From contig NC_068986.1 of NCBI RefSeq assembly GCF_001194135.2, forward strand, positions 44,654,943 to 44,718,942: a stretch of 64,000 bases of DNA, read 5' to 3'. Origin of the DNA: Octopus bimaculoides. Lineage: Eukaryota. Positions 2,202 through 64,000 of this stretch are shown in pieces. The position numbers and the translations under genes are program-made. Numbering within the stretch: position 1 is the first letter of the stretch; every line of letters begins with the position of its first letter. Below the pieces are notes generated by a model. It searched no databases. It saw nothing but the letters and a program-made list of their open reading frames with translations, and was not told the DNA's origin.

Positions 2202-2205
<4 letters not shown>

Positions 2206-4610: not shown

Positions 4611-7600
4611 TTGAGTTTTAATGAGATCATAATGGATATTTTTATTTCTTTTTCAGGTCTGAAACCAAACTTGGTGATTATCTTAGTAGTATACTCTGTA
4701 ACCTTCAAACCATTAATAATCCAAGCAAGTAAAAACCAATATATTATTGAATATTGGACTAAAAAAGCTGAAAAACAAATGGAAATCAATACAAATATGC
4801 CAACACACTACAAACCCTATGAAATTAATTATATTAGGACAAATAAACTCTTAGATGAACAAAGTTTACAGAAAAAGTTAAAAAGTATATTAGATCTAAG
4901 AAAGCTTAGGCAAATTACTAATTTTAAATTTCAAAATTCATTTAATGAATCTGTGTTGTCATTGGAAGTATTTAGTGATAAACATAAGTTTCAGGAGATT
5001 CATATTGTATATATCAACCATCTTAGTGACTTAGTAACCATAAAACCAAATTTAACATTAATCAACAAAAATCACAAGTTTTTTAAAAAAAGGAAAATTA
5101 AAGTGATTCTGGTGCCCTTGGAAGAATTATATCATAGTAATAGCTCAAATTTTATTCTTGATATCATAAAGCAAAAGCATTTACATAATAATTCTAAAAT
5201 TAGTAGCTTTTCTAATAGTAAAAAATTAAGGGTATTTTATTTTTTGCCAATTAAGGATAGAGTAGATGTTTTAAGTAATATGTTTCTCAACCAATTCTTT
5301 AAAATTTGTTTTCTTTTACATAATAACTTGGAAATCTGTGATAGGTATAACATTACAAAATTAGTGGAGCAAAATTCAGCTGTAAATATTAAAATATTGG
5401 TTATTATGGAAGATACTTTTATGAATATTTCAGAAATTGCATGGTACTTCCTTAAACCTCAAGGGATGAATGGTTTTGTAAATTATGTTTATTTAGTCAA
5501 TTACAACTTTCTACTTAAAAAGACTAACGATAAAATAAATCATTTTGTAATTATTTGTAAGATTAAATCCCAAAACAGTACTTTTTCAACACTATTTGAT
5601 GATAGACTTAAAGATGAAGTGGTATGCAAATATCTTAGTTCTCTGGGATCCTCTGTGATATTAATAGTAAACCATGCTAAAAGTAATACAGACTTCATTG
5701 ATGAAAAATCTGTTGAACTTCTCCATAATTATATCCCTGAAATTAAAGTTTATGTATTAAAATCAAATATAATTCTCTATTTTAAAAGTCATTACCTGAA
5801 ATATAGAATAATTTCTCAAGCCCAAAGTAACTACTCAACAAAAAAAGATGTAAATAGTAAATTCAGTTTAAAGAATTTTAAAAACAAAGGCATTTATGCA
5901 CCAAAAACTGCAGTTTCTCAACTACCCTACATCCTTTCATCTAATTTATTTCATTTTGATATTCAAAACCATCGTCTATTTTTTGTTAAGTCTACAGCTT
6001 CCATAATTTTTACTCAATTACATTCTGGTGAAACAAGTACCCTGAATCCAAGTGTCAGTCTGTTTATGACAAAATCTGTGTTACAAATGCTCAACAACAC
6101 AAATAACATAAAGTTATTTGGCAAAAATATAATACAAGTAAAGAATTACAAATTATTTACTTCTAGAATCAAACGAGACATTAGTTTTGGAAACAGAAAA
6201 AAGTTGCATTTAAAAAAGAATGATGATTCATCATACTTAAAAAAACGAAAAAAAATATTTAAAATCCAATCACCAAAGAAACTAGCCAAACAAAGAATAG
6301 TTTCAAACCAAAAATTAGAAGATGAAGCTGATAATGAGGAGTTTGAAACTAGGTGCTCACAAGAAAGAGAAAAAGAGGAGGGATCAGACGACAGTCCTAA
6401 AAAAATACCTGAAATATTTGATAAATTTAATTCAGATCAAAGAGATTATTATGAAGATGAGAAAGTTAAGCACAGGCGAAAAATACATTTTCCATGGAAA
6501 AGAAATAAATTACAGAAATTTGTAAATTCTAAAAAGAGAATTTCTAAAGTATTTGGCTCAAATAAAGTAAACAAAATAGAGTTATCTTTACAAAACACAG
6601 CAGTTAAAGGTGGAAATGGAGACAGCCAGTCAATTGCAATTTCTCTCGTTTGTATTCATGAGACCAATTTTATAAAATATGGAAATAACATACCTGTAAC
6701 ACTAAATTGCTCTTCTCCTGGCAAAGTTGCTCCTAAACCAGATGATGTAATTGTTTATTTGTATTGCACTCCAAAAATAAGTAGCAACAATAGCAGTGGG
6801 GATAAAGTAGATATAAACTTAAACTGTGTTCCTGGACTGAGTGCTACTTCTAATGGCTCACTCTTACCAGTGAATCTTCACTGTACTAGTGACCTTGATA
6901 TTCCTTCATATAAAGACTTTCTTCATATATCTTTAAACTGTCTGCCTATTGTAAATTATAACCATTCTGTGGATGAAAAGTTCTCCCAAGGAATGGTAAC
7001 TAGTAAAACAATTGAAATATTAATGACAGGAAATAAATCAGACCAATCAGAAAAACATCTGAGAAAACTCTCTGTATCTCTCAGATGTATAACACGCCGA
7101 GGCTTTGCAGTAGATGGGAAAACTATAGATGTTTATGTACATTGTATACCAGGTTATGTATCTAAAACTCCCCGTAAAAAGCTTGTTGCAAAATCAAAAT
7201 TTTCAAGGAGACAAGGAAGGCAGAAATGTCCTTATCATAGGCTAAAAAAGGGGAAGAGGTTGTATATAAAGAGATATTCCTTGAAAGATAAAAGAAAAAG
7301 ACTTTTGTTGATCGATAAAGCAAAGAAAAGGGGATCACAGTCAAGTGTAGGGCAGCCAAAACTGAAAAGCAGAAAAAAGTCCTTACTGAGAAGGAAAAAA
7401 CAGAAATATTTAAAAAAACATTTCCCTACTAAACCTTGTAAAAAGCTTATGACTAAAATATTTACTACTCCAGCACCTGTTTCATCTACTACACTGAAAA
7501 TGCTCAAAATACATCACACTTTATCTGTTTTATTAAAAAAAACTGTATTATTTAATACTGTGGCTACTGTCAATTTAAGGAGAACAGTAAGTAGCAGACT

Positions 7601-10600
7601 TTTTAATCAAGTGACAATAAGTCGGAAACTCCCAATATTTTCTATTCCACTGAAAGATACCATTCAAAAACAATGGCATAGTTCTACAGAATTGATCCCT
7701 TCAGTGAGATCAACACCACCTGTTTATGCTGAAAAATACAACACAACAGAAAGAGTATTAGGTATATTTAAGGAAGTCCTTACAACAAACAGACAAGAAG
7801 TGAAAACTAGCAACTTAAAATCATATAAAACATCACAAAATATAATACAACATTCACCATTCAGTTTTAATATCTCCAAAATAAATAGTACCAGCAAAAA
7901 ATTGGAACTCATAAGATCAGAGAAATTATCTCCAATTAGAACACAATCTTACATGGTTACATCAAAAACATTACCAGTCATTCCACATAATATACCTACA
8001 AAAATTACATCTAATTTTAGTCTGGATATTGTAGAAGTCACTGATACATTTCTGTATCCAGAAAAAACAACTTTGATGATAACCAAAATAGTTAAATTAG
8101 GTGAAAGTATGAGATTATTTCCTAATATCTCCTATACAGAAGGAACAACATTCTCTAATTTGCATCTTAGGATCCAGTCTCAATTATATCAAAATAATCA
8201 AAGTAAAAGTATTCCTTCAAAAGATTTGAGTTCTTTAAAAAGTTATTATACTACTGTGAAAATATCTCTGTCAAAGCAGAAGCCCTATTCCAAAACTACC
8301 ATGGATTCATCATTTATATTCAAAAAGTACTTGTTAGGACTACTTCAGACATTTAGAAGTATTGAGAATACATCAAAAGCCTCAAAAGTATATCAAACTA
8401 CACCTACTTGGTGGGAGTTATTGAAACTAAATGAGTCTAAATCACTAGAAACATTAGTAAAACCAGTTGAGAAATTTGTAACAGTTGCTTTAGACCAAAC
8501 CAAATCAGTTGATGATTTGTTTAAAAGCTTATCATTCATGTTAAATCAGTCATCAATATTCATGACAGATATTAACCAAACTACAGAACAAAGAGATGGT
8601 AGTAAAGTAAAAATATATGAAATGCTTTCAAAGTCAACAAAAAGAAAGTTATTTAGTGGGGAACAGATAACAACACAAGTAATTCTTCAATATACATTGT
8701 TTGAAAAAATAAAAACACATGTAAAATATCAGCTAACACCAAAATATTTTTATACATTTTTAACACCAACTTTCTTATCTGATCAGATAACTACACCAAT
8801 TACCAGAGAGAAACTACATAAATCACACTTTATACCAACTGTATGGTTTATTGAGAAAAGTACATCTCAGTCTATATTTCTTAGTATAGGCAGTCCAAAG
8901 ATTCCACTGTTGATGAGCACAACGCACATTCTAGATCAACTTAAACTACAGTTTTGGGACAAGATTTCTAGAAGAGTAACTGAGAAAATATCGACAAAAA
9001 AAGCAAGACAATTAATTAAGGAATTTACTTTATCAGATGTCTCACAGAGTTCTGACAAAGGTTTCACTTCAGGAGATACAGATTTACTATATATCAATGC
9101 AAGCAAGAAATTACTTTCTCCTGGATCAGCTCATATTAAGTATGTTCTTGGAGGAAATGTTGGTCAAGATGTAGGCTTGAACTATAACTTAAACACATAT
9201 GAGATTTTTGTTCCTTGGTTAGATATAACAGAACCTATGGCACCATTAAATGAGTCTTTGATTACAGCAAAACATGGAAGATCAACTTCAGTAGAACGAC
9301 TGAGACAAATTACCAAAAGTGAGGATGAATCAAAACAAATTGATTTAAAATCCAAAACTATTCATGATGATCCAAAAGTAATTTTGGCTTTGTCAGGAGC
9401 AGAATTTGACAAGAAAAGTTTAAACAAGCCAATATTACCTGCCCATTCTCTACCAGAAGAAATTGCAACCCCTATTTTATTCCAATCCAATGTACAGTAT
9501 TTTGACCAAGAAGTTACTTTTATAAATCTGACATATACTTATGACAAGGAAATATATGAAGCAAGAGAAACAGGCTCAGTAAAAGAAATGTCAGTCCCGT
9601 TTACTACTTTTCAAGAAGGGATATCAATTGTGCCTCCTGAAAGCAGAGATTACATTGACTCTGGTGTTGATACAACAGAGTTGGAATTTATCACACAACA
9701 AATGATGCTAAAACATAAAACTGAAGTAGAGGATAAAAGTGGATTTGAAATTTTGAAAATTCCAAGAATTAGTGAAGAAAAATCAAGTGATCTTTTCAGT
9801 TCTACAACAATAACATTTGAGAAAACTCTGACTTTACTTACAAGAAATTTGTCAACTAAATTATTAAAATATGTAAGGACTGGAAGATTAACAGAAATTA
9901 TCATTCAACATAAAGATGTGACAGAAGCAACCATTTCAAGAAATACAACACATGTGCTTCTTTTAGAGGAATTACATACTTATTCTTTTGCAACAACAAT
10001 CTCACTGTTCAGAAGTAGTATAACTGCTGTTGCTAAGAAAGTTGTGACAGTTCCCCAAATACATATAGGTGGATCAGTTTCTACTAGTTATGTTATTGTT
10101 GATAGGGATAACATCGTAGTTCCACAAGTATATACAAGTGGATCAATTTTTTCTGAGGATTTTATTGTTACTATGGATGAAGTTCTACAAGCACATTCAG
10201 ATCAATCATTTGTTGCTAGGGACATCACAATTTCACAAATACACATAAAAGTATCAACTACTCAAAAGAAAGCAGTTGATATTAGGGAGACTGTTACAGT
10301 TCCACAAATACACATAGATAACATTCTTGGTTCTGGGAGTGTTGTTACTTGGGAGACTGTTACAGATCCGCAAATACATACAGAAGATTCTCTTTTTACT
10401 AAAGACGTTGTTACTAGAGATATGATCACATCTCAACAAATACATACAAATGGATTCACTGTTTCCAAAACTATTGTCGTTGCCAGTAATGTGTCCAAAG
10501 TTCCACAAATACACACAGTTGGCTCCTTTGTTTTTAAGGACAGCTTTCCTAGAGATATTGCTTCAGTTTCATCAAAAAGTATTGCTGAATCAAGTATCAC

Positions 10601-13600
10601 TAAGTTTTTACTTATTGATCTACAACTAAGCAGAACAAAACCAGAGATTACCCTAGATGTTAGTACAACTCTGAAATATGATAGTAAGGATTCAGTTTTT
10701 GTTACTGATGCAGGCGCATTTCCCAAAATTTTAGAAAGATTAGCTATTAATGTTACACTGATGGAAAAGGATGTAGATAGTTTGATTTTTAAAGATTTTG
10801 TCACAGCTACACAATTACTGAGAAATGGATCAATTATTACTAAAGATTTAGTAATTGCTGGTTATGTATCTATTACTACAAAGAAAGTTATTACAGTACA
10901 AGTTGATTTAAATGGATCATTTATTACTAAAGATGCATATACAGTTCCAAATATTGATATTGCCAGATTAGATATCCCAATTGATGAAGCTACTCCAACA
11001 AGAATTACTAGTGATGGATATATTGTTGCTACTAACATTACATCTGTTCAACAAATTAACATTGATGGGATGATTATAGCCAAGGATTTTGTTACTATTC
11101 CACGAATTGATCTTGTTGGTACTAGTGTCATTGTTACAGTTCTAAAACCAGAGAAATCATTTAATATTATGGATACAGTTACTGTTTTACTAAGCAATAC
11201 AGAGGGACTAAGTACTACTGTAGATGCTGTGGTGAAGATTGGTCAAGATGAATTGGCTATTGCTATACATACTGTCCAGTATCCACAAGTAGATGTATAC
11301 ACTTCATTTCATACTAGAATACCTGTTACCTTTAAACAAACTGATATGGCTGTTACTAAATCAGGAAGAGTAAAAGATGAGTTTCTTGTTGCTAAATATA
11401 TTGTTTCAGACCCACAAATTTATGGATCAGACATTGTTAGTGATGCTGTTGTAACTAGTTCTGTTGTTATAGTTTCACACAGATACTTTGGTGGATCAAC
11501 TGTAGTTCAGGACAGTGTTAAACCAGCAGAAATTGACATGTATAAATCATTTGTAACCAAGGTTTCTTATAGCATGCATATTGATCAATTGGAAGATGCT
11601 TACATTACTAGAGATAAATCATCCATAGATAGATATATTTCTGTTGTTTGGTATCCTGTTATAACGATTTCTAAGGATGGTGTTACTGTTCCACATATAG
11701 CTGGGCCAGTTCAACAAAGTACATCACTTGCAACTAGAGATCCTGCCTTTGTTTTGGAAGTAGTTAGTGGCAGATCATTTAATCCCAGATATACTGTCAA
11801 AGTACCTCATGTCGATACTGATGGATCAATTAGTTTTAGAGATTTTGTTAATGTTTCACAAGTTGTTATTGAAGAATCTACATCAGTTGCTATGGGTACA
11901 TCTGTAGTTTTGCCAAGTAACACAAATAAATCAATGATTACTACAATTTTCATTAAAGTTACAAAAAAGGATATATCTACTAATACTAAAATAACTGTTA
12001 AAATTCCACAAATAGACAGGGAAGAACCAGTTTTTGGTAGGGATGTTGCTGATGATGTTAGGAAGATTATTAGTGTTCTACGGCCTGATGTAACTGTAAA
12101 ATCAGTTGTTATTATGAGTGCAGTTACAGTTCCACAAGTAGACAGAGATGGATTGGTTATTAAAAAGGAAAAAACTGGGACAGATCCCCAAGGATATATA
12201 ACAGCAATGAAACCACTAACCTATTTTCAGTCGCCATTAACTTTTCGGAAACAGAAAACAATTACAATATATTTACCATGGCATAAGGCTTTTACTTCAA
12301 AATTTATAACTGAGCAGTCTACAACACAAACTAGACTAGATGATATTTGGTGGAAAAGAACACAAATATTGGCTGATAAAGGTACTGATAAAAGAATAAC
12401 TGCTACAGTTATGAGAATAATGGATATACAAACATTAGAAACTCCTCTCCAATTAGGAACTGTCAAAACTTTAATGTTTAGAGTTGGTAAAGATTTTTTA
12501 AATGCTTTATCAACATTCACTACAGAAAGAGAAAGCTGGAAGTTAACTTGGAAATACAATGTGACAACGTTACTAGATATAGTAGTTTCATACCCTACAT
12601 TTTTCTTAACAGTATCACCTACACTGTTAATTTCCTCCACAAATATAAAAACAGATATTGATAAAAGCAAGCCAACAGTTATTCCCATTCAGTCAACAAG
12701 TCCAACTAAGTTGTTTGGTGCAACTATGAATGAAATCATTCAGCTAACAGCAAAAGAACTTTCAGAAGTGGATACTGTTACTTCTCTGACTATACTAAAT
12801 GAAATGATTAGTAGCACTCTTACAGAAGATATATTTGTTTTTTCTGAAACATCAGAAACAACAACAGAGACCACTGATCCTTTTTATTCAATGCTGGAGA
12901 TATCTGGTTATGAAATGCTTCATAAAAAAAAGTTATCTGAACATTTTAAGCAGATGTCTCAGTTAACCGACAGAGATATGGAAATCTTAACACCAATGTC
13001 TTTATTGGCTCCAGGATATCATTCTGCAGACCATCTGAGCTCAGATTTCAGTTCTACCCAACAAAGATATTTGACAAGTATTGTTATCTCTCCCATTGAA
13101 GAATATTTTAGAAAAACACCAGAAACTACACAGTTATCAAAAACCTTTTTTACAAGAAAGGAAAAACATGTGTCTCAAACTGATTTTATACCTAGTTTTA
13201 GGATGCCATCAGTTACTATAGAGACTATAAAGTCAAGAAAATTTGATGGAGTACATAAAATTAAATCTAAAATTATAGATATTACTACATTTAATACCAT
13301 TGATATCACCCATGGAAGATTACAGGGAAACAAAAGCAGATACGGGGAAGGATTAATTCTTTCTACTTACACATCACAAAGTGTAAGTCAACATTCTGAA
13401 GCTCTTTTTATAGGTAAACATGATAATATGAGTGGATTTACTGAGAATTTAGTTCCAACAGTCAGCTCATTTGATGGGAATAGATACCTGCACAGGCTTG
13501 TTCCTTCAAAAAGCAGTTCACAAAATGGGTTAATTTCTTCTTTGAGTTTGGAAATATCAAATCTAACTAAATTCAGTCTTTCAACAACTGAAAAGAAATA

Positions 13601-19600: not shown

Positions 19601-22600
19601 ACCTTCTCAAAAAATGTATAAAGATATTTTAGTAACAACATGCCCAATTCAAAAAATACTTGAAGAAAGAACAATCTATTCTGAAACGAGGCATTTACTC
19701 CAGACACATCAACTTTCATTCGATGTTACAACCAAACAAGTACTAGAAGAAAATCTTGACTCTATTTCATCAAAACCATATAGTTTTGGAAAATATGTAA
19801 TGCCAGCCTGGATGCATTTTACCACCACATCAGCTTGGAAATTGGGAGAGGTTTCAAAACTGAAAAACCAAACTGACAAACCGGTCACCAGTGGTTTATT
19901 CAGAGTAACCAGAAGTCACTTTATCAAAGAAGAGCAGTCTATTACAGAAAATACTGAAACTGAATGGTATAAATTGCTAGAAGTTTCTACACTAAAACTA
20001 ATTTACAAATTACCAAAAACTAAAAAAGCAACTCGATTATTGATTTCATTTATAGCTTATTCTAACACCTATTTTGACAGTATGATTACTTTTATTACAA
20101 CTCAAACTACAGTTTCATCAAAAGTATTTTCTCCAATTGAAGAAAGTGAGTTAAAAATCAAATCAGTATCACATCACACGGTTACACAATCATTTCAAAA
20201 GTTTGAATATGGTTTAATATCTAAAGATCACAGGCATAAAGTAAATACAATATTTATATTAGATTATTATGATTTTTCAACAAGCCGATACTTTACAACA
20301 GACTCCTCTGATACTTTACCATTTAAAACAGTTCAATATTTTAAAGAGTCAAGCAGTGAAATTTCGTTCTTCCCACACTTACTTTATAATATAACTTCTT
20401 TGTTATCTAGATATCCTAATCAAACTAATGCTTCTCTTTCATCTGCCCAATTGATCAAAAGTACTGATGCTACTTTTGCATTTAGTCAAATCTCTAAAAT
20501 AAAAGTAATAGGTCCAACTACTGAAACTAATGCTAGTCAAATTAGTAAACTTCCTTTCAGTACACTAGTTTCTTCAAAACCAAGTGCTATTACTACTGAA
20601 AGTACAAGCAACTATTTATTAATCAAACCAATATTTAGTGTAGAACCAAAATATCCAAATTTAACAATCAAGTATGAAACAAGTAGAAATGTATCTGAAA
20701 CTTTTGCTGACATTAATGAAAGAAGTATTTTGACAACAGATGTACAATTCCTGACATTTCCTGAAACCAAAGTGGTAAAGAGAACAAGTACTGATTATGT
20801 AATTTGGCTTTTAGATGATACTTCTGAGAAAGTCACACACTATACTTACAAGGAAATTACTAGCTTCCATAAAACAGGGAAAACATTTTATATTTCAGAC
20901 AAAATTTATTCAGAATCATTACTTCAAACCTCTTCTGAAGTAATTGGTTACATTTTGGTAACAAGCCAAGCATTTCAAGAATCTTCTTTGTTTAGAGAAA
21001 GTTTTCAAAGAAAAATAAAATTCACTCAAAAGTCTGATTTTATTAAACAGGTTCAATTGAAGTCAATTTCAGTTACTGTGCCTTTCAGCCATAAGGATTA
21101 TTTTGCCTTACTTCCATCTAGCTCAAGAGCAAAAACTGCTACTGAGGAAATTTACACATATAGACTTAATTTGGAGGACACTTCAATTTCAAAAAGGCCT
21201 CAACACTTATTATCCACTAAAATTAAAACAAGTAAATTTTCTTTAAGTAGTTTTACTATAATGTTTGATGCATTTGAAGATAAAAGAGACCACACTATCT
21301 CACCTCATATTTTTATGTCAACTTTACCTTTTGTAGTCACTTTAGATTATAGCAAAGATGATGCTTTTGCAAAACTGAAAAGGCTTTCTCAAGTCCCAAG
21401 TTCATCAAATATTACTAAATTGATTGTAACTATACTTCCTCCTAAAGGAAGACAAGAATTTTTATCAGAACTTGATAAAATAAGCATTAGCACAGGCTCA
21501 GAGCAAACTGCTATAGTAACAGAAATGGAAGTTGATTATGAAACTCATGAAAAAAATGCTACAACATACCAAGAAAATTCTGAAATATTTACATTCACAA
21601 GCAAAATAAAGACTAGAGTAGCCAATGAAAGTAGCATAAAGAGTGACATTTTAACTGAATCAACACCTAGAAGCATCATAAAACATTCTTTAGAACATAA
21701 ACTAGTTTCAGAAGAAACACTAAGTTATACAACAATTCGAAATGTAACTGACATAATAACAGTATTGCAAGTTACTGACATTGTTACTCAATTTGAAATA
21801 TCAACATTAGCAACCACATTATATAGACCCATGGTAGCTTTAGTAAGTGATGTCAAATCAACAACTGACTCTTTCATTATTACATCAATAATTTTTTTCA
21901 CATCAACAGAAAGCATGTTACTAGATTTTGCTTCAAGTTCTAAAGCATTAATGCATGAACAGAAATTACTTCAAAATAAAGGTTTGCAAAGCAAATATTA
22001 TACTACATATTCAACAAAAGGATTTACAGATTTCACATCAACTTTGCAGGAAAATCTTACATCCATGCTCACAGATTCAGTACAATTACCTGCTTTTGTA
22101 ATTGGATTGTATTCAACAGATATGAAGACATTAATTTTTATTAACACTACTTCAAACACTACCGAATATGTTACCAGAACCTCCAAAACAACCATTGAGG
22201 AACAAAGTGATAGTAAAGTAATAAAGTATACTGCTATACCAGTTGAATTAGATAAACGTAAATTAATATATTTGAAAGAAGTCATAGAGCAGAAATCTAC
22301 CCCTGTGATCTTTACACCAATATCTATGAAAATATATACATTATCTAAAATTATTTCAGAGGAAGTAACTCAAATAACATTCATCACTCTATCTACATAC
22401 CCTGAAACAATAACAGAAACATTCTTCACAAATATATATAATGTCAGACATATTTTGAAAAACATTACAAGGAAAACAGTTTCCCATATATTGAAAAAAT
22501 CACTTCATACAAAAATTGCTCCTGCTGGTCCAATAGATAGTTTGAATAAATCTGTAATGATATCAAAGGATTTAAGCACAACTTTTTTTGTTAAGATTGA

Positions 22601-48100: not shown

Positions 48101-51100
48101 AATCTATTGCATATGATGATAGGGAAATCCTCACTGACTTTAGTGATATATTAATTAGATCCAAAGACTTTCATGAAGCAACAACAGAATCTATAACAAG
48201 GGAACATAATATTTCTCAGAAGGTGATAACAAAGGGAATTGCTGTTGATACCAAAATCATTGAATCTAAAGTCTCAGATGATACAATAACAATGCAGAGT
48301 TTAGTCTTTGATAATATAACAAAGGAATCGACAATATTTTATCAAATGATAAAAGAAGTAAATATTTCTAAAGCTGTAACAAAGAAATCTATCATCTCTG
48401 ATGATGTAACAACATATATCTTATCTGATAATGGAACAATGGTAGCTGTCACATCTGACAAGTTAACAGTAAAATCTAGCCTTCTTGGTAATGTAACCCT
48501 GGAATCTACCATTTCTCATAAGGCAACAGTAACTTCCATCCTTATTGATAGTATAACAATGGAATTTACTATTACTGACGATGTAAGAAAAGCATTCACT
48601 ATTTTTGATAATTTAACAACATTTATTACTCCTGATTATGTAAGCTTAAGACATATAGCTTTTAACAACATAACAATGTATTATATAGGTTCTGAAAATG
48701 TAACAATAGAATATAGAGTATCTGATGATGGATTAATAACACTTATTGGAACAAGTGATCATGTAAAACTCATATCTAAGCATTCTAATGACAGTACAAT
48801 TAAATCCATTGATTCTGATGGTGTAAAAATGAAGCATATAATTTCTGATGAATTAACAGTTGCACCTTTAGTTTTCACTAGGAGAGTAATAGAGACTAGT
48901 TCCTCTGGTGATGGAAAAATTGGTTCTATACTCTTTACTGAACTATCTTTGAGACCTGTAGACTCCGACAATGCAACTATAGCATCTGTAATATCTGATG
49001 AAGCAATAACTGGATTGATTATTCCAGATCACGAAATTTCGAGATCTGACTACACATCAAAGAAAACTCTTCGTATTCATGATGTAAAACCAAGGACTCT
49101 TGTTTCTGGTAAGGTAAAAGTTAAGACTCAAGTGGTAACTAAAGCCATACACTTTATATCAAAGCAATTTCTTGTTAGCGATGATATAACAATCAGATCT
49201 TTAATCAGTGATTATAGAACAACAAGATATCTACATAGAGACGATACAACAACACAGTTTCTAGTGAGTGATGACACCAAAGATGATATTTTAACATCAA
49301 GATTTAAAATTATTGCTGATGAAGAACCAGTAACAAAGTCTCAAATTGATCATGATGTCACAAGTTCTATGCTTAGTGATCATATAATATGGTCTCTAGT
49401 GAGTGCCAATATAACAAATTCTCTAATTAAAGTTGAGGTAACAATGAGATCTATATTTGGTAATTATGTAACATGGAAGTCTAGAGTTGATGAGGATGCA
49501 ACAAGATTTCTTGCTGAGGATGACAATATAACAATGAGATTGCCTTTTGTCAGTGATGATGAAAAAAAAGCATCTGTTGACTCAGTTGATGAACATATGG
49601 GCTCTACTCTCTTAGCTATTGCAACAGTTGAATTTGCAATCCCCCATGATGCAACAAGGAAAGACACAATTTCTACAGAAATACTCTCTGATAATGAAAC
49701 AATTGAAGAACCTGTATCAGAATATGTAACAATGTCATCCATGTTCACTCAGGATGTAACAGCAATAACCACATTTTCTGATTATGTAACAATGCAACCT
49801 ACAATATTTAATGATACGATAATGAATAGTACCATATATGATGATGTTATAACAGGATCCGTAACATCTGACAAAACAATGGAACTCATGGTCTTTGAAG
49901 AAGTGACATCAAAATATACAGTTTTTGATAATATAACAATTGACTCTAATGCTACATCGAGATCCACAGCTTCTGATGATGTAGCAACGATATTTTCACT
50001 AAAAGATGATACAGCAATAATATCCACAGTCTCTGGTGATATAGCAGTCAAATCTAAATTTGATGTCAAAACAACAAAGTACATAGTATCTCGTGACATA
50101 AGAGAACAATCCAAAGTCTCTGGTGGTGTAGCAATGAAGTTCATAATTTCTGGTGATGTAACAATGAAATCTACAGACCGTGATGATGATGGTGTCACAA
50201 AAATATTCACTTTCATTCAGATTGTAACAATGAGAACTATAGTTTCTTTTAAGGCTACAAGGAAATTTCCATTGCCTCATGGCATAACAAAGAAATCCAC
50301 TGAATCTATGACAATGAAATTCAAGGTCTCTGATGTAAGGAGTTACACGGTCTCTGATAATGTAACCACTAAATTCACACACTCCAATGATACAAAAATT
50401 ATAAAAACGGGATTGGCAATATTTGATAATATGACATTTAGATCCTCTAGCAGTAGAGCAATACAATTTGTGGATTCTGAAAATGCTACTACTCATACCA
50501 CTGTCTCTGATGATCTAACATTTGGGTCTATTTTCTCTGATGAGACTATAAGTGAATCTGTTGTTTTTAGTCATGTGACAACAGGATATATTTTACCAGA
50601 AGATATAACAGATGCAATTGACTGGGATTCTAAAGCAGGAGAATTAATTACTAAGAAAGATGTAGTAACAAAACAAACATTCATTGACTTATCAACTGTG
50701 ACTTTTAATGTTTCAAGTATATTGACTACTATGGGTGATTCAGTCACAACGTTTGTTGTTTTACAAAATTCTACAACCATTGCTACTGATGATTATATTA
50801 CAATACGTATCGCCGTAAATGGCTCATTTGCTGTGGCTACTACTACAGATGACTCAATCACTAAGACTGTTTTAATAAATGGTTCTATCATTGAGTCAGT
50901 TAACATGTCTGCTTCTATGGAGGATTCAGTCCCCATGCTTGTTGATAAAGATGATTCAGTGAATCAATCAGTAGCTACAAATGCTTCTATATCCATAACA
51001 GCTATCACTGATGATAGAGCAGGTCTAATTATTAGAGAACATTCAAAGGTACCATCAAGTGTGGAAGACGATGATACAATATCTACAACAGTTCAGACTA

Positions 51101-54100
51101 GCATTAAAATAATTATGTTAACTACTTATGGTATTGTAACAAGAGCTGCAGTAGTTGATGATCACACATTAAGATCACTTGCAACTGATCCCCAATTGAC
51201 GAGAGTATCTGCAACTGATTATATAAAATCTTCAGTAATTATAGACAAGTTAATCATTGGTTTAATTACTGCTAACAAGACACTATATGTGTCAGATGCT
51301 ACTGAGGAGGTGGTGTATAAGCCAGTGGTTATTGATGTAATGATATCCAAACCGGTTACTACAGGTATGACAATATATAAATTGATTGGTAGTGATGTCA
51401 TAACATATAGAACAATTCTATCTGATGTAGTGACTCACAAAGCAATTGGTATTGACAATAAAACAACTCAATCACTCAGTACTCATGTAGTAATGTACCA
51501 GCCTTTGACTATTAATGTAACAATATATAGACCAGTTATTCCTTATACTGAATTGAATAAAACAGTTGGCATTGATGATAAAGTGGGTGGGTCTCTTACT
51601 ACTGATCTAATGATATACAAATCACTTGCAGTTGATACTATCATTGCTACAGATGTGGTAACACATAAACAAAATGGTACTGTTCTCCTAACATATAGAC
51701 CACTTGCTTTTGATTTTGTGACATACAGACCAGATGTTACAGGGGATACAGTAGATAAACTATTTGCTACCCATGTGATTACATATAAACTAATTACAAC
51801 TGATGTTGTAACATACAGACCAGTTGTTACTGGGAAGAAAGTTGATGCGCCACTTGTCACTTACCTGGTAATATATAGAATGATTGTTACTGATAAGCCT
51901 GTTGCTACTAATAAAACAGTATATAGATCAACTGCCACTAATTTGGTAATACATAAAACTGTTACCACAGAGATGTTGACGCATATACCAACAGTTGCTG
52001 GCGTGAAACTATATAGACTAGAAGCTATTAGTGATGTAATGGTTCCAGCAACTACTACAGGTCATGTAGTGATTGAGCCAACCACTAGTGGAGATATAGT
52101 GGTTCAACCAACAGCTACAAATGTAGTTTTGTATAAACCAGTTGTTATTGTTTCAGTAACATATAAACCAGTAGCGACTAGTATTGTAATATATAGACCA
52201 ATATCTATTGATGTCATGGAATATAAATCAGTTACTTCTGATAAAACTATACATGAACCAGTTGTTATTGGTGAAACTGGTGAGGCTGAAGATATGTCAG
52301 CTACTACAGATGAAGTCAAACCAAGATCAGTTGCTGCCCTCAAAGCTGTATCAAGTTTGATCAAAGGCAATGAAACAATATCTAGATTGCTTACCACAAA
52401 CAAAAGTGTATCTGAATCAATTTCAAGCACAGAAACACTATCAGGAATAATTGCCACTGATGAAACAGGTACAGAATACAAAGCTATAGCAGGTTTGGGT
52501 GTCACAGTTAAAGCAACATCAGGATTAGTTGCTACTGATAGAGTAACATCTCATTTAATTGACTCTTTTAGAGCAATATCTACTTTAGCTGCAACTGGTA
52601 AAACAATAACTGGTTCAACTGGTATGGATAAAGTATCATCTAGATTATTTACCTCTATCGAAGCAATGTCAGTCACCACTGAGAAATCAATATATGGACC
52701 AGCTGATGAGGCTGAAACAATATCTGTATCAACAACTGACACAGATATAGCAATATATAAATCAGTTGATGATGTTAAAACTGTATCTGTATCAATGATT
52801 GCTACTGATGTAGCAATATCTGACTTGGTTGATTCTGATGAAGCAATAAGTGTAACTGTTATCACAGTCTCCCCTGATGAAGCAGTATCTGTATCAACTC
52901 ACACTGAAACAATATTTGGATCAATTGAGACAATGCCTCATGCAGTTGTTGTCAAAGAAACAGCACTGGTATCAGCTATAACTATCAAAACAAAAATTGA
53001 GCCAATTGCTTCTGATGATGGATTAGTTACCATTGATGAATCAGTATATGGGCCACTTGCTACTAATTTGATTAAAGATAGACCAGTTGCTACTGATGTT
53101 ACAATATATAGACCAGCTGTTACTGGTGTTACAATATATAGGCCAAGTACTACCGATGTTACAATCTCTAAACCAGTTGTTACTGATGTTACAATATATA
53201 GACCAGATGTTACAAATGTTACAATCTATAAACCAGCTGATACTTATGTTGCAATCTATAAACCAGTGGCTACAGATGTTAAAATCTACAGACCAGCTGC
53301 TACTCAAGTTACAATCTATAGACAAACTGCTACTGTTGTAACAACCTATACACCAGCTGCTACTAATGTTACAGCCTATAGACCAACAGCTAGTGATGTT
53401 AGAATCTATAGACCAACAGCTAGTGATGTTAGAATCTATAGACCAGTCTTTTCTGATGTTACAATTTATAGACTAGATGCTACTGGTGTTACAACATATG
53501 CACCAGTTGCTACTGATGTTATAATCTACAGACCAGCTGTTACTGATGTTACAATCTATAAACCAGCTGCTACGGATGTTACCATCTATAGTCTAGCTGA
53601 TATTGATGCTACAGTCTATAAACCAGATGTTACTGATGTTACAATCTATAAAGCAGAGGCTATTTATGTTACAATGTATAGCCCAACAGCTAGTGATGTT
53701 ACAATCTATAGACAAAATACTTCTGATGTTACGGTCTATAGACCATCTACTACTGATGTTACCATCTATAGACTACCTACTACTGATGTTACAATATATA
53801 GACAAGCTGCTACTTATATTACTGATATTATTATCTACAGACCATTTGTTACTGATGTTTCAATCTACAAACCAGCAGTTATTGATGTTTCTATCTATAG
53901 GCCAGCAACTACTAATGTTACAATCTATAAACCAGCTGCTACTGATGTGGCAATATATAGACCAGCTGCTACTGATGTTATAATCTATAGACCAGCTGCT
54001 ATGGATGTTACCATCTATAGACCATCTGCTACTGATGTTACAATCTCTAGACCAGCTATTTTTAATGTTACAATCTATAAAGCAGATGCTACTGACATTA

Positions 54101-57100
54101 CAATATATATAACAGCAGCTAGTGATATTTCAATCTATAGATCAGATACTACTAGTGTTACTATCTATAGACCTCCAACTACTGATGTTACAACCTATAA
54201 ACAAGCTGCTACTAATGTTACTGATATTACAATCTATAAACCCGTAGCTGCTGATGTTTCAATCTATAGATCAGCTGTTACTGATCTTACAATTTATAGA
54301 TCTGCTACAACTAATGTTACAATCTATAAACCAGCTGCTACAGATGTTACAATTTATATGCCAGATGCTACTGATGTTACAATCTATATACCAGCTGCTA
54401 CTGATGTTACAGTCTATACACTAGCTGATTCTTATGCTACTGATGTTGCAATCTATAGATCAAATGCTACTGATGTTACAATCTATAAACCAAATGCTAC
54501 TGATATTACTGATGTTACAATCTATAGACCAGCTGCTACTGATATTACAATCTATAGACCAGCTGCTACTGATGTTACAACCCACAGATCAGTTGTTACA
54601 GATGTTACAATCTATAGACCAGTGGTTACTTATATGTCAACATTTAGAACAATTGTTAAAGATGAAAAGGAATATGGACCAGTTATTACTTCTGATGACA
54701 AAGTAACACATAGATCTGTTGATGGCACATTATATGGAACAGCTATGTATGAGATCACATATAGATCACTTACATTTAATGAGACAAAGTCCAGGTCAAC
54801 TGCCATTGATAAGAAAATATATAAGCCATCATTTGAAACTAATGTTACTGATGATACTGATGAAGACATAAGAACATTAATCACTAGTGACTATGTGTTA
54901 GAAAGTGGTCAAGTTAAAGATTATCTATCAGTTACTTCTGGAGTAATAATGTTTCATTCAATCACTTCAAAGGATACAACATATAGCCCAAATGTTACAG
55001 TCAAAGCAAAATATAAAACAGTTATCACTGATGAAACAATACATGGTACAGTTACCACTGAGGAGGCCACATACAACCTGGTATTGCCTGGTGCAATTGT
55101 TCCTGGTACAATTGTTTCTAGTACAATTGTTTCAAATAAAACAATATCTGGCACAAATGAGACAATATCTGGCACAGTTGCTAAAGATATGATAATAACT
55201 AGCAAAGTTATCGCTGATCAAACTATATCTAGCACAGTTCCTACAGATGAGACAATATCTGGTAAAATGGTTATTAATGAGACAATACATAGTACAGTGA
55301 CTATGGATGAAAGGATAACTGGTTTAGTAACTACAAATAAGATGATATCTGATAAAATTGTCACTAAAGAGACAATACCAGGTACAGTTGTTACTGATGA
55401 AATAATAACTGGCATAGTTGCTAGAGATGAGATAATATCTGGGACAGTGGCTACTGATATGATATCTGGGACTGTTGCTGCAGATGGGATAATACTTGGC
55501 ACAGATGCCACAGATGAAATAATACCTGGTGCAGTAGCTACAGATGAGATAAAACCTGGCACACCGACTACAGGTGAGATAATACTTGGAATACCTACTA
55601 CAGAAGAGATAATAACTAGCATATCTGCTGCAGATGAGACAATACCTGGCATACCTGCAACAGATGAGATAGTACCTGGCATACATGCTACAGATGAGAT
55701 ATCTGGCACATCTGCTATAGATGGGATAATACTTGTTACATCTGCTACAGATAAGATAATATCTAGTACGCCTGCTACAGATGAGATATCTGGCACATCT
55801 GCTACAGATGAAATAAAATTTGGTACATCTGCTACAGATGAGATAATACCTGGAATACCTGCTATAGATGAAATAATACCTGGGACACTTGCTACAAATG
55901 AGATAATATCTGGCACACCTACGAGAGTTAAGATAATATCTAGCACACATGACACAGATGAGACACTACCTGACGTAGTTGCTATGGATGAGACACTCCC
56001 TGCCAAAATTGTTACTAATTACACAGGACGAGACACAGTAGCTACAGATGACATAACATTAGATACAGAGGCTACAAATGAGACAATACCTTATACACTT
56101 GTGGCTGATAAGACAATGCCCATTAAACTTGGTACTGATATGGAAAGCTATGGTACAGTTACTATTCATGAGGCAATGTCTGGTGTAGCAACTACAGATG
56201 AGATGATATCTAGTTCTGGTGACACAAATGAAACAATACAAAGAACAGTTGCTACTGATGAGACAATATTTCACACTGATGTTACTGCTGAGGCAGCAGC
56301 TTCTACACTTGCTCCTGATGACACAACGCAAGGCACAGATGCTGCTGATGAAATAATACTTGGCACAGATGCTACAGATGGTACAACACTTGGAAGTTTT
56401 ACTACTAATGAAGTAACAGCTGGCACAGTTGCTACTGATGAGAAAATGGCAATATCTAGACTAGCTACAATTCAGGAAGCAATATGTTATGCAGTTACTA
56501 CAAATACGATGGCACTTCACACAGATGTTATTTATAAAACAATTCTTGGCACAGCCATTACTGCTTTCACAATATCTGATTGGCTTGTAGCTACAAATGG
56601 AACAATGACTTGTACAGCTGTTACAAATAAAACATTGCCAGGTAGAATTGTTACAGATGAGATAACATCTGGCATAGTTACTACAGATGAGACAATGCCT
56701 AGTACAGTTGCATCAAGTAAGACCAGGCCTGGTACAGTTCTTATGGACGAGATAATACCTGGCATATTTGGTACTGTTGAGAATCTAACTAGCAGAGTTG
56801 TTACTAATCAAACAAGGCACGGTACAGTTGTTACTGATGAAATGCTTCGTGGCACAGCTATGACTAATGTGGCACCACCTGGCATAGCCGTTACTAATGA
56901 GACACTACCTAGCACAGCTGCAACTGATGTTATGCTAGCTCGTACAGCTGTTACTAATGAGGCACTACCTGACACAGTTGTTACTGATGAGATACTACAT
57001 GGCACAGCTGTCACTAATCAGATGCTCCCTGGCACAGCTGTGACTGATGTAATGCTACCTGGCATAGCTGTCACTAATGAGACATTACCTAGTACAGTTG

Positions 57101-60100
57101 TGACTGATGTGATGCTACCTGGCACAGTTGCTACAGATGAGACACTACCTGGCATAGCTGTGACTGATAAGGCACTACCTGGCAAGGCTGTTACTAATGA
57201 GACACTACCTAGCACAGCTATAACTAATGTGATGCTACCTGGCACAGTCGTTTCTGATGATACACTACCTGGCACAGCTGTTATTGATGAGATCCTGCCT
57301 GGCATAGTTGTTACTGATGTGATGCTACCTGGCACAGCTGTGTCTGATGTGATGCTACCTGGCACAATTGTTACTAATGTGACACTACCTGGTACAGCTG
57401 TGACAGAGATACTACCTGGCACAGCTGTTACTGCTGTGATATTACTTGGCATAGCTGTGACTAATGAGACACTACATAGCAAGGCTGTTACTAATGAGAC
57501 ACTACCTAGCACAGCTATGACTGATGTGATACTACCTGGAAAAATTGTTACTAATGGGACACTAACTGGTACAGCTGTGACTGATGAGACACTACCTGGC
57601 ACAGCTATTACTAATGAGACATTACCTAGCACAGCTGTGACTGATGTGATGCTACCTGGCACAGCTGTTACTGATGAGACACTACTTGGCACAGCTGTAA
57701 CTGATAAGACACTACATGGCACAGCTGTTATTAATGAGACACTACCTGGCACAATTATGTCAGAGACACTGTCTGGCACAGCTGTTACTGATATGATACT
57801 ACTTGGCACAGCTGTGATTGATGAGACAGCACCTGGCAAGGCTGTTACAAATGAGACACTACCTAGCACAGCTATGACTGATGTGATACTACCTGACACA
57901 ATTGTTACTGATCAGGCACTACCTGGCACAGCTGTAACTAATGAGACACTATCTGGCACAGCTGTGACAGAGACACTGCTTGGCACAGCTGTTACTGATG
58001 TGATACTACCTGGCACAGCTATGACTGATGAGACACTACCTGGCACAGCTGTAACTAATGAGACACTAGCTGGCACAGCTATGACTGACGTGATGCTATC
58101 TGGCACAGTTGTTTCTGATGAGACACTACTTAGCACTGCTGTTACTGATGAGATACTGCCTGGCAGAGTTGTTACTGATGTGATGCTACCTGGCACAGCT
58201 ATGACTGATCAGACACTACCTGGCACAGCTGTGACTGATGTGATGCTACCTGGCACAGTTGTTACTAATGCAACACTACCTCACACAGATGTGACTGATA
58301 TGAAGCTACGTGGCAGAGCTGTGACTGATGAGACACTAACTGGCATAGCTGTAACTGATCATACACTACTTGGCACAGATGTTACTAATGAGACACTACC
58401 TGACACAGCTGTGACTGATGTGATGCTACCTGGCACAGCTGTAACTGATGAGACACTACCTAGCATAGTTGTGACTGATGAGACACTACATGGTATAGCT
58501 GTTACTAATGAGACACTACCTGGCACAGCTGTTACTAATGAAACACTACCTGGCACAGCAGTTACAGATGTGATGCTGCCTGGTACAGCTGTTACTAATG
58601 AGACACTACCCGGCACAGTTGCTACTGATGAGACACTACCTGGCACAGCTGTGACTGATGAGTCACTACCTGGTGCAGCTGTTACTGATGAGACACCACC
58701 TGGCACAGCTGTTGCTGATGAGATGCTACCTAGCACAGCCATTATTGATAAGACACTACGTGGCACTGTTGATGAAACATTGTCTAGAACAATTAGTATT
58801 GACAAATCAGTATCTAGCATATTTGCTACTGATAAGTTATCACCTGACACAGTTGTTACTAATGGAACACTACTTGATAAATTTGCTGCTGATGAGTCAA
58901 TACTTGGTATAATTGTTGGAGCAATGTCTAGTGCTGCAGTTGTTAGTGATGAGACAATATCCCAACCAATTACTACTGGCACTACAAATGAAACAGTAGA
59001 TTGGCCAGTTGCTACTGTTCAGACAGTCTATTGGCTAGTTGACACAACTAAAGTAATGTTAGAATCATTTGCTAATGATACAACAATAAATGGAACACTT
59101 GCTGTCATTGAAGTCAAATATGGACCATCTACAACTAAAGAAACAATATCCCAATTTGTTACTAGAAAAGAGAAAATTCCTGAACCAATTCACTCTGATG
59201 GGATAACACAACTGAAACGTTCACTTGCTACAACCGAAACATTCTCTAAATCAATTTCTACTGATGAGGCCGTACTTGAAACTGTTTCCACTGACATGGT
59301 AATATATGAATTAGTTTCTACTGATGAAAAGATTCTTGAATCAGTTTCCACTGAGGCAGCAACACTTGAAACAGTGTCTACTGATGAGGTAGTACAAGTA
59401 TCAGCTTCCACTGATGAGGTGATAGACAGATTAGTTTCTACTGGTGTGACAATATATGGATCAACTTCCACTGATACAGAAATAAATGTATTAGCTACTG
59501 TTACTGCTGATACCGTAGTAAGACTATTTTCTGCTAACTGGACCATAATTAGACCAGTCATCACTGATAATACACAAGACAGAAATATTACTATTGAAGG
59601 AAAGGTAGCTAGACAAACTACTATAGTCAGGATGGTTGTCACAGATGAGACAATAACCAAAACAACTGTCTCTGACAGAACAAAATATTATTTAATATCA
59701 ACATCAGTTACAATCATTGATTTAACACAAAAGTCAGTCGTTAGTTATGATGCAAGACACATTGAATCTGCTTGTGATGTAAAATCTCTACGAGTAGATA
59801 CTTCTGGTATAATGTTATCTGGGCCAACGATAACTGAAAAACAACTAACTGAATCATATGAAGACAGTTACACAACAGCTGCACTAGTTGGTGCTTCTGA
59901 TTATATCAGGAGCACTCTAATTATTACTGATTATGGCTTGTACACTACATCACAAAAAGCCATTCTTGTAATGAAATCTATTAAATATAAATCTGATCAA
60001 ACTGCTTTATATAAAATGACTGAAACAATTACAAAAACAGGTGTTACTGACATTCAGAAAAGAATACCACAAATCATCCATTCCAAACTTTTTTCTGATG

Positions 60101-63100: not shown

Positions 63101-64000
63101 GAAAATTTACTATGTCTATAATAAAACCTGTAAATTATACACAAAAATATACAATATACCACCCTACTGAAGTTCTTTTAATATCAGAATATATTACAAC
63201 TAAAGATACAATAACTGTCTCTTCAATACAAAAGAAATTAACATCTGAAGATAGTGCATCAGGCATTTCTATCACATCTAAACAGACAGTAAAATCTGTA
63301 TCTGTTACTTCTATGACAGCACATGTAAGATCTAAGGAGGCTGAAATTCAAAAACCATATGAAGATAAGGTACAATATATTGTACCAGAAATCATAACAG
63401 GTGTGGCAACTAGTTCTGTTATAGAAAAAGCTACTCCAACAGCAGTTGAAGAACTTGTAACATCTAAAGTTCATGTCACTTTTATATGGAGATATAAAGC
63501 ATCAAAAGATACAAGATTAATTATACCTGAATGGAAAAGAATATTTGCCACTGCTGTAACAACTTACAAAATATCCACAGAAACAGAATTCAGTATTTTA
63601 GAATCAGGAGAAATATCATCCACAGATGTAACTGTTAAATCATCTGAAGACAGTATGTTTACAAGTCCTGTATTCAAAACAATTACATTGGTAAAAACAG
63701 ATGGAGATTTTTCAGGTTCCCAGTTTGAAGATAAAGCTACTTTGGACTCTAGACTGAAATATGTAACATCTAAATATATACAAACTATTACTTCTGATTC
63801 AAAATATGTAACATTTGAGGATACAGAAAATATTACTTTTCTACTAGAACACACAGCATATAAAGATTCCACAGTTGTAATATTTAAAATTGTACAAGAT
63901 GGCACTTCCCAACAAAGGCTTAAAACATCTGGTGATACACATATCATTACTCTCATACCTGAACATATAACAACTGAATATTCAATAAATTTTACTCACA
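27067..64000 (+). CDS. Giant mucin-like/structural glycoprotein, part 2 (12,311 codons, open to window end; absent from the ORF track because no stop is reached)
   Basis: Frame begins TTVTPGNTTVTPHNTTDITLSPYG... and ends ...EHITTEYSINFTH at the edge. I hand-checked 27067-27660 and many later lines and found no stop. The ORF track lists no + ORF in this frame after 27086, although any later stop would have produced one. Confidence 0.88.
31681..33030 (+). repeat. Degenerate ~36-bp (11-12 aa) coding repeat, consensus F-N-[HY]-S-I-x-P-x-T, about 38 copies
   Basis: VNHTVIPITNM, INYSIFPVTSVS, FNHTILPKSIVT, FNHSTIPVTSIF, YNHSIVPTTVT, YNHSMFPETTVL, FNHSIIPITTMS. Confidence 0.85.
34528..34629 (+). 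repeat. 42-bp in-frame tandem duplication x2.4
   Basis: SEVTVKMYMTDLGS / SEVTEKMYITDLES / SEVTEK. Confidence 0.85.
46830..48100 (+). repeat. Highly degenerate ~9-aa coding repeat (I-I-T-G-S-x-x-T-D)
   Basis: LLTGSASSLD, IMGSAKS, IINGSMITD, ITTRSWVID, MITGSKDID, FIHGSQSD, VITGSVP. Confidence 0.55.
48240..50600 (+). repeat. Degenerate 30-bp (10-aa) coding repeat, consensus I-S-D-D-V-T-M-E-S-T
   Basis: VFDNITKEST, ISKAVTKESI, LSDNGTMVAV, TSDKLTVKSS, LLGNVTLEST, LIDSITMEFT, ITDDVRKAFT. Confidence 0.75.
51210..52280 (+). repeat. Older, degenerate Tyr-Arg/Lys-Pro decapeptide array
   Basis: VVYKPVVIDV, TIYKLIGSDV, VTYRPDVTGD, ITYKLITTDV, VTYRPVVTGK. Confidence 0.75.
53080..54630 (+). repeat. 30-bp coding minisatellite encoding T-I-Y-[RK]-P-A-A-T-D-V, about 51 copies
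   Basis: DNA unit acaatctatagaccagctgctactgatgtt; three in-frame 9-bp (TDI) insertions near 53821, 54220 and 54500. Confidence 0.95.
55210..58980 (+). repeat. 30-bp coding minisatellite encoding acidic V-T-D-E-T-L-P-G-T-A and variants; homogeneous core ~56800-58760 (about 65 copies)
   Basis: DNA unit gttactgatgagacactacctggcacagct. Subtypes TNETLP, TDVMLP and TDETLP, with occasional 27-bp units. The upstream subarray reads ATDEIISGTP. Confidence 0.95.
59248..59500 (+). repeat. 10-aa coding repeat S-T-D-E-x-x-L-E-T-V, about 8 copies
   Basis: KSISTDEAVL ETVSTDMVIY ELVSTDEKIL ESVSTEAATL ETVSTDEVVQ VSASTDEVID RLVSTGVTIY GSTSTDTEIN. Confidence 0.85.
61995..63470 (+). repeat. Degenerate ~15-aa coding repeat I-S-E-[YH]-V-T-S-x-D-x-I-T-V-S
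   Basis: TQEYVTFKDALTIVS, LPEQVISSDITIVSS, ISEHIASEKLANVSS, ISDHVTFGYVVITVS, IPEYVISEVITVKT, ILEYVTSKDKAFVTVS, ISEYITTKDTITVSS. Confidence 0.7.

Follow-up and report, generated by a model that had tools for sequence, protein, structure and literature searches.

The central exons of the vertebrate mucins MUC12, MUC16, MUC4 and MUC19 encode Ser/Thr-rich, glycosylated and Cys-poor extracellular stretches, grow by in-frame repeat expansion, and are routinely broken by annotation liftover. A 2026 long-read study reports human MUC12 alleles of up to 23,080 aa, and calls its central exon the largest in the human genome (PMC13345508). In Drosophila, Mucin 14A (Muc14A, CG32580) spans 52.6 kb and has a tandemly repeated coding region (PMC7108745), while the single-exon silk genes, such as spider AcSp1 (about 19 kb), are very long intronless coding regions (PMC3563967). 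We report here an octopus reading frame of comparable or greater length, most of which shows no detectable repeat.

An open frame of at least 59 kb

The window analysed, a stretch of 64,000 nucleotides from Octopus bimaculoides, had been noted in a sequence-only reading to contain a single frame of about 19,700 codons, interrupted only by an assembly gap of 354 N. This observation was confirmed. Scanning the + strand gave stop-free stretches at 4608-27083 (reading through the Ns) and 26710-63999, the real sequence being made of part A and part B (Table 1), both without any in-frame stop. The other frames carried 643/779 (+) and 625/260/735 (−) stops in part A, and 1123/1439 (+) and 892/416/1344 (−) in part B, i.e. 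one stop per 9-12 codons in the other + frames. Given position-specific base composition, about 340 and 425 in-frame stops are expected in the two parts (log10 P = −151 and −188). Period-3 composition is strong, GC3 is about 0.2, and every 100-codon window preferred the same frame.

Table 1. Features of the octopus frame (window positions).
Position	Strand	Feature	Observations
902-1452		N run
4605-4607	+	In-frame TGA just upstream of the frame	Same in O. vulgaris, as are the first 62 residues
4608-26710	+	Part A: 7,367 codons plus the first 2 bases of a codon split by the gap	Colinear with O. vulgaris ORF codons 1-7376, 90.7% aa identity
4632-4634	+	Candidate start codon (ATAATGG context), first Met of the frame	Conserved in O. 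vulgaris; single-base indels at about 4504 and 4597 show that coding does not continue upstream in this frame
4638-4656	+	Alternative 5′ boundary: pyrimidine tract followed by CAG|G, resembling a 3′ splice site	If used, phase-1 junction, with an upstream exon supplying the start codon
4671-4727	+	Hydrophobic segment LVIILVVYSVTFKPLIIQA, candidate signal peptide or signal anchor	One of only two 19-residue windows in 19,678 residues with mean Kyte-Doolittle hydropathy above 2.0; 14 residues after the first Met
5307-7439	+	N-terminal Cys-bearing region, 15 of the protein's 36 Cys	Eight spaced h-x-L-x-C motifs (ISLVC, VTLNC, VYLYC, INLNC, VNLHC, ISLNC, VSLRC, VYVHC); all 15 Cys conserved in O. vulgaris
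10029-10940	+	Degenerate repeats of about 17-21 aa	VTVPQIHxxGS...
21843-22622, 27067-27780, 29878-32142, 32587-33663	+	Stretches concerned by the internal splicing of the O. vulgaris gene model
26385-26710	+	21-bp (7-aa NTTVTPH) tandem array	Runs into the gap
26711-27064		Assembly gap (354 N, length only estimated)	Matching stretch in O. vulgaris open, in frame, made of the same repeat
27065-63999	+	Part B: last 2 bases of the split codon plus 12,311 codons (27067-63999)	No stop by the window end; codons 1-6232 colinear with O. vulgaris at about 90.5% aa identity
27084-27086	+	False stop
31636-33009	+	Degenerate 12-aa periodic region
48067-59466	+	Zone of 10-aa periodicity, decayed at its edges and fresh at its centre	30-bp arrays at 53078-54664 (RPAATDVTIY), 55087-55993 (TDEIIPGTxA) and 56310-58766 (TAVTDETLPG); sub-threshold Extensin_1 match

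The false stop lies where the sequence-only reading had placed it, and its arithmetic for the gap is also correct. The left side ends 2 bases into a codon and the right frame starts after 2 bases, so that the true gap length must be 2 mod 3. The same 21-bp repeat lies on both sides, and whole repeats in register give 8+21n, which is also 2 mod 3. The claim that most of the frame is not tandem repeat holds as well: arrays detected with TRF cover about 9% of it, internal paralogy detected by blastp covers 3% of part A and 26% of part B, and a periodicity scan flagged 22 of 95 windows. Overall, about 78% of the frame shows no detectable short-period repeat.

Conservation in Octopus vulgaris

To ask whether the two parts form one frame, we turned to a gap-free chromosome assembly of Octopus vulgaris. 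The orthologous locus (OX597819.1, no Ns) has one stop-free frame at 7109-48337 of the locus, 13,743 codons long and colinear with both parts. It crosses the place of the gap in frame, with the same 7-aa repeat and no stop. The stretch missing from the window comes to 260-302 nt, which is 2 mod 3 either way. We conclude that the apparent frameshift is an artefact of an estimated gap length.

The comparison between the two species also revealed selection on the frame. We found dN 0.038 and dS 0.068, giving a dN/dS of 0.565 (Fisher p = 1e-26). The first 964 codons have the lowest dN (0.0175), with a dN/dS of 0.39. All 42 nucleotide-level indels are multiples of 3 (1.0 per kb), against only 6 of 22 (6.8 per kb) in 3.2 kb of upstream non-coding DNA. 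About 109 ± 10 new stops are expected under third-position rates, and none was seen. Selection therefore maintains the frame against stops and frameshifts, at least up to window position 45762 where the comparison ends, while most individual residues evolve fast.

The sequence-only reading had also predicted that annotation pipelines would probably split or truncate such a frame, and this is the case in O. vulgaris, where it is filed as separate "hypothetical proteins". The gene model starts at an internal Met, leaving out the 964 best-conserved N-terminal codons, removes four GT..AG "introns" of 780, 885, 2265 and 1062 nt that are in-frame and stop-free, ends in a 14-aa out-of-frame tail, and is followed by a second model inside the same frame. 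No paper mentioning A0AA36AZK7 or CAI9724496 was found, nor any on giant exons in cephalopods, and the accession is absent from the portion examined of the supplements of an O. vulgaris skin-mucus proteome.

Features of the predicted protein

The part encoded in the window weighs 2.20 MDa, in agreement with the mass above 2 MDa proposed earlier. Ser+Thr amount to 25.4%, Thr+Ile+Val to 31%, and Cys to only 0.18%, the 15 conserved Cys being confined to the N-terminal region. There are 392 N-x-S/T sequons against 153 ± 10 in shuffles, a 2.5-fold enrichment, and 62% of Asn lie in sequons. Sequon Asn are conserved more than other Asn (248/271 against 175/213, p = 0.002). Furin-type and dibasic sites are not enriched.

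Searches for known domains were negative. A Pfam scan of all 19,678 aa gave only the sub-threshold Extensin_1 hit in the 10-aa arrays, and the N-terminal 1,000 aa of both species gave nothing at E ≤ 10. A PDB sequence search of the N-terminal 1,000 aa found nothing meaningful, and Rfam found nothing in the window. Searches for homologous proteins found nothing either but, as they failed to return the O. vulgaris model present in the same collection, this says nothing about homologs. AlphaFold2 predictions on aa 1-600 and on the region of about 20-aa repeats, run as single sequences, gave pLDDT of about 31, from which no structural inference is possible. Hydropathy periodicity of 5/10 comes mainly from the 10-aa arrays, with no alternating beta pattern, and an analysis of codon-position variability by column in the 30-bp arrays was spoiled by register shifts and is uninformative.

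We next asked whether the frame avoids cryptic processing signals. It does not: AATAAA/ATTAAA motifs are not depleted (121 against 135 ± 12), nor are GTRAGT donor motifs (18 against 23 ± 4.5).

Interpretation and comparison with known systems

We are fairly confident that the locus is one continuous protein-coding frame of an octopus gene, covering at least 59.3 kb (about 19,766 codons) in the window, with its end lying beyond. It most likely lies in a single exon starting at 4632 (own ATG) or 4657 (splice acceptor), two options that could not be told apart; in the absence of RNA, cDNA or peptide evidence, transcription as one unspliced exon and translation remain inferred. The product is most likely a giant secreted, heavily N- and O-glycosylated extracellular protein, although, without a signal-peptide prediction on MDIFISFSGLKPNLVIILVVYSVTFKPLIIQASKNQ, its N-terminal segment can only be called signal-like. 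A conserved region of about 950 aa would follow, with Cys that could link molecules by disulfides, and then a body of at least 18,700 aa almost free of Cys and rich in Thr, Ser, Ile and Val, which would act as a long glycan-bearing filament or gel former, in the manner of a mucin. The decayed-edge, fresh-centre pattern of the arrays suggests that the body grows by expansion of short in-frame repeats of 7, 10, 12 and about 20 aa that then diverge beyond recognition.

The main alternative, which we consider unlikely, is that the frame is coding but not one exon, with in-frame internal stretches removed by splicing, as in the O. vulgaris gene model or as alternative "exitrons", so that mature mRNAs and proteins would be much shorter. 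The four annotated introns do have a higher dN/dS (0.76, not significantly below 1) than the annotated exons (0.53), and, as seen above, donor-like motifs are not depleted. However, all four are multiples of 3 and stop-free in both species, 1,664 codons in total where one stop per 10-20 codons is expected, indels inside them are in frame, and their codon-frame signal is the same as elsewhere. The truncated N-terminus and out-of-frame tail of the model are what a gene predictor produces when it cannot cope with a giant exon.

The other explanations are rejected. Two genes abutting at the gap would account for the difference in frame as written, given that the gap length is unknown, but this is very unlikely in view of the open, in-frame O. 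vulgaris sequence, of the repeat running from one side to the other, and of the register of this repeat. Openness without selection, in a recently expanded stop-free repeat or a decaying relic, could be invoked because parts of the frame are arrays of stop-free units and dN/dS is high for a coding gene. It is very improbable nonetheless, as most of the frame has no detectable repeat, dN is significantly below dS, and neither the stops nor the about 28 out-of-frame indels expected under neutrality occurred. An assembly artefact or chimera is just as improbable: the window comes from a scaffold with estimated gaps, but an independent assembly of another species is colinear over 41 kb, including the upstream flank. 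Finally, for a transposon- or virus-derived ORF, no reverse transcriptase, integrase, polymerase or capsid domain was found with Pfam, and position and upstream flank are conserved between the two species.

A more speculative possibility, which we hold only tentatively, is that this is the longest mostly non-repetitive coding exon so far noticed in an animal, belonging to an octopod-restricted orphan gene whose full frame may approach or exceed titin in length. Repeated birth and decay of short in-frame repeats would have built it, while selection preserved only openness of the frame, composition and glycosylation sites, not the sequence. If the frame is transcribed and translated as one piece, it is an extreme case for exon definition, transcription and translation of an mRNA of 60 kb or more in an AT-rich genome full of cryptic poly(A) and splice-like signals. 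It would also show that selection can hold tens of kilobases open while constraining residues only weakly, without the help of recent repeats. Transcriptome and proteome studies of octopus secretions using current models would under-detect or mis-assign the product, a candidate major structural glycoprotein for mucus, egg coat, sucker lining or another surface, that nobody has looked for.

How does the locus compare with known systems? The sequence-only reading took human MUC16 exon 3 (about 22 kb) and TTN exon 363 (17 kb) as the largest well-known human coding exons, and the frame as nearly three times larger. In view of the MUC12 alleles this comparison is outdated, and the frame is not three times larger than every human exon. 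It shares with the vertebrate mucin exons a very large uninterrupted coding stretch, its exon status being inferred, but differs in being mostly non-repetitive. Vertebrate mucin exons are VNTRs with S+T of 40% or more plus Pro, whereas only 9 of 1,958 100-aa windows here reach S+T ≥ 40% and P ≥ 5% (overall P 3.9%), so that the body fails the usual PTS criterion. Ile, Val and Leu are abundant, N-glycan sequons are enriched as well as Ser/Thr, and no vWD, SEA, EGF or cystine-knot domains were seen in the part contained in the window, which lacks the C-terminus. Muc14A is likewise an invertebrate mucin-type gene of about 50-60 kb with coding sequence in very large exons, but its coding region is dominated by a unit of about 271 nt repeated many times, while the octopus frame is mostly unique sequence. 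Dumpy, among the giant apical-matrix proteins of Drosophila, is built from hundreds of EGF/DPY modules and a ZP domain spread over many exons, and no such domains were found here. The Ig and FN3 arrays of titin/obscurin-type proteins were not found either. Compared to the silks, which are highly repetitive and Gly/Ala/Ser-rich with conserved terminal domains, the frame is about three times longer, with Gly at 2.6%, Ala at 2.7-4.3%, no such repeat architecture, and no Pfam spidroin domains.

Continuity of the frame across the assembly gap

On the + strand of the window, one frame is free of stop codons over 7,367 codons up to the assembly gap and, with an offset of one base, over 12,311 codons from the other side of the gap to the last full codon (Table). 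Over the same two spans (parts A and B), the other two + frames carry 643/779 and 1,123/1,439 stops, and the three − frames carry 260-1,344. Using the position-specific base composition of the frame itself, about 340 and 425 in-frame stops are expected (log10 P of none = −151 and −188). Base composition has a strong period of three, GC3 is about 0.2, and every 100-codon window was found to prefer the same frame. The numbers of the sequence-only reading, including the false stop that it had placed just after the gap and the stop density in the other frames, are all correct.

The left side ends two bases into a codon, and the right frame begins after two bases, meaning that the true length of the gap must be 2 mod 3, whereas the 354 written in the assembly is 0 mod 3. 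The same 21-bp unit (NTTVTPH) lies on both sides, and whole units in register give 8+21n, which is also 2 mod 3. To test this decisively, we turned to a relative. An exhaustive HMMER search with the first 1,200 residues returned one protein, CAI9724496.1 / A0AA36AZK7, "Hypothetical predicted protein [Octopus vulgaris]", of 7,276 aa. Word-indexed searches did not return this 92%-identical protein, although it is a representative in the collection searched, and negative results obtained that way for very long, compositionally biased queries should not be trusted. Its locus, hereafter L001 (OX597819.1:84,212,294-84,260,630 reversed, from GCA_951406725.2), has no Ns and contains a single stop-free frame of 13,743 codons running to the end of the fetched DNA. 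This frame is colinear with the window: codons 1-7376 match part A, and codons 7465-13743 match part B codons 1-6232, at about 90.7% amino-acid and 94.7% nucleotide identity. The stretch without a counterpart in the window is 88 codons of the same 7-aa repeat, open and in frame. Depending on how the repeat is aligned, the implied missing length is 260 or 302 nt, and both are 2 mod 3. The two parts are therefore one frame, and with a 260-nt gap the window holds 19,766 codons.

Features of the window and of the O. vulgaris locus L001
Feature	Sequence	Position	Remarks
Assembly gap upstream of the frame	window	902-1452	551 N, in non-coding DNA, 3.2 kb upstream of the frame
(AT)39 microsatellite	window	2133-2210	
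Flank with an inverted duplicate in L001	window	2150-2884	matches L001 4339-3641 (minus strand) as well as 4924-6168 (plus strand)
Longer upstream region with several (AT)n tracts	L001	about 2700-5030	orthologous upstream region about 2.5 kb longer in O. vulgaris
Conserved stretch just upstream of the frame	window	3656-4607	950 nt
Open frame, part A (+)	window	4608 to the gap at 26711	7,367 codons
First Met	window	4632	ATAATGG
Alternative splice-acceptor start	window	ending at 4656	pyrimidine tract plus CAG|G, phase 1
Repeats of about 17-21 aa	window	near 10.0-10.9 kb	
Assembly gap in the frame	window	from 26711	354 N, 7-aa repeat on both sides
Open frame, part B (+)	window	27067-63999	12,311 codons
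False stop	window	27084-86	
In-frame length difference	window; L001	about 29720; 32176-32392	72 extra codons in O. vulgaris
12-aa repeats	window	31.6-33.0 kb	
Second hydrophobic 19-mer	window	46384-46440	FVLGSVISLIINTVIPLTF
10-aa repeat zone	window	48 to 59.5 kb	decayed at its edges, fresh in the middle
GC-richer 30-bp arrays	window	56000-60000	GC 0.40-0.43
Antisense open stretches	window	57021-57911 (minus strand)	up to 297 codons
Stop-free frame	L001	7109 to end of fetched DNA	13,743 codons
Second gene model	L001	40385-48337	4,617 aa, running off the locus

Selection on the frame and its annotation in O. vulgaris

We next asked whether the frame is maintained by selection. Over 13,515 aligned codons, dN = 0.038, dS = 0.068 and dN/dS = 0.565 (Fisher p = 1e-26), the two species differing by 4-6% in DNA. 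A nucleotide-level alignment revealed 42 indels of 3-48 nt, every one a multiple of 3, in addition to one 72-codon difference, the largest length difference found outside the gap. In 3.2 kb of alignable upstream non-coding DNA, 22 indels were found, of which only 6 are multiples of 3; this is a density seven times higher, with a mismatch of 5.7%. The 950 nt closest to the frame are about 95% identical to O. vulgaris with only three small indels, i.e. as conserved as the ORF and more than the DNA further upstream (about 90%), and may hold the promoter, the 5′ UTR or the end of an intron. The inverted duplicate of the flank in O. vulgaris is about 700 bp long. If all sites had changed at the rates seen at third positions, 109 ± 10 new in-frame stops would have appeared, but none did, in either species. 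The frame has thus been protected against nonsense and frameshift changes since the two octopus species split, while individual residues are only weakly constrained.

The O. vulgaris gene model starts at an internal Met, codon 965 of the frame. It removes four "introns" of 780, 885, 2,265 and 1,062 nt, ends in a 14-residue out-of-frame tail, and is followed 2 kb later by a second model inside the same frame, the annotated "intergenic" space between them being open frame too. The 964 codons left out at the 5′ end are the best conserved part (dN 0.0175, dN/dS 0.39). The sequence-only reading had predicted that pipelines would split the frame, and this is borne out.

Whether the frame is a single exon can only be inferred, as the support is indirect and there is no RNA evidence. 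All four "introns" are multiples of three and stop-free in both species, 1,664 codons in total, whereas introns of ordinary length would carry stops in DNA this AT-rich. No stretch of the frame looks non-coding, and all interspecies indels are in frame. However, the "introns" do have a higher dN/dS (0.76, not significantly below 1), so that facultative splicing cannot be excluded, and the frame is not depleted of poly(A) hexamers or donor-like motifs.

Anatomy and inferred nature of the product

The first Met is followed after 13 residues by LVIILVVYSVTFKPLIIQA, one of only two strongly hydrophobic 19-mers in 19,678 residues. The other lies deep inside the body; it is probably due to chance, but is long enough for a membrane span. 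Sequence and conservation cannot decide between a start at this Met and the alternative splice-acceptor start. The first 950 residues or so are Lys-rich and hold 15 Cys, eight of them in spaced h-x-L-x-C motifs. All 15 are conserved in O. vulgaris, while the few later Cys are variable. The remaining 18,700 or more residues have a strikingly uniform composition: S+T about 25%, T+I+V 31%, K+R about 11%, D+E about 11%, Cys 0.18% overall and Trp 0.4%. N-x-S/T sequons number 392, against 153 ± 10 in shuffles, and 62% of all Asn lie in sequons. Sequon Asn are better conserved than other Asn (91.5% against 82.2%, p = 0.002). Detectable repeats are local arrays (Table), and about 78% of windows show no periodicity. 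In the 30-bp arrays, GC rises from the value of about 0.30 seen elsewhere, and the open stretches on the antisense strand there are most likely a by-product of the repeats. The part of the product encoded in the window weighs 2.20 MDa before glycosylation. No Pfam family, PDB sequence (for the N-terminus) or Rfam family was found to match, and two AlphaFold runs were uninformative.

Beyond one conserved, selected coding frame, the nature of the product is inferred from the signal-like start, the sequon excess and its conservation, the S/T richness, the Cys-free body and the conserved Cys-bearing head. On that basis, it would be a secreted or surface glycoprotein, whose head would link molecules or anchor them, and whose body would be a long glycan-carrying filament or gel former, working like a mucin or an apical-matrix protein. 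The gradient from fresh to decayed short repeats, together with the uniform composition, suggests growth by in-frame repeat expansion, followed by divergence under selection for openness, composition and glycosylation sites.

Comparison with known giant exons

The closest known things are the giant central exons of mucin genes. Older tallies give longest exons of 17 kb in human and 27.7 kb in D. melanogaster (PMC3563967), and Drosophila Muc14A spans 52.6 kb with a tandemly repeated coding region (PMC7108745). A 2026 long-read study reports human MUC12 alleles of 4,677-23,080 aa, and calls the central exon of this gene the largest in the human genome (PMC13345508). The size alone is therefore extreme but not unprecedented, and the statement of the sequence-only reading that the frame would be nearly three times larger than the largest well-known human coding exons is outdated. 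Several properties nevertheless set the octopus frame apart from those exons. It is unrecognised as one gene in the only annotation inspected, it has no homolog outside Octopus in a library of 1.84 billion proteins, for the part tested, and no recognisable domain in the part available. It also fails the PTS criterion, which only 9 of 1,958 windows meet, and it is mostly non-repetitive.
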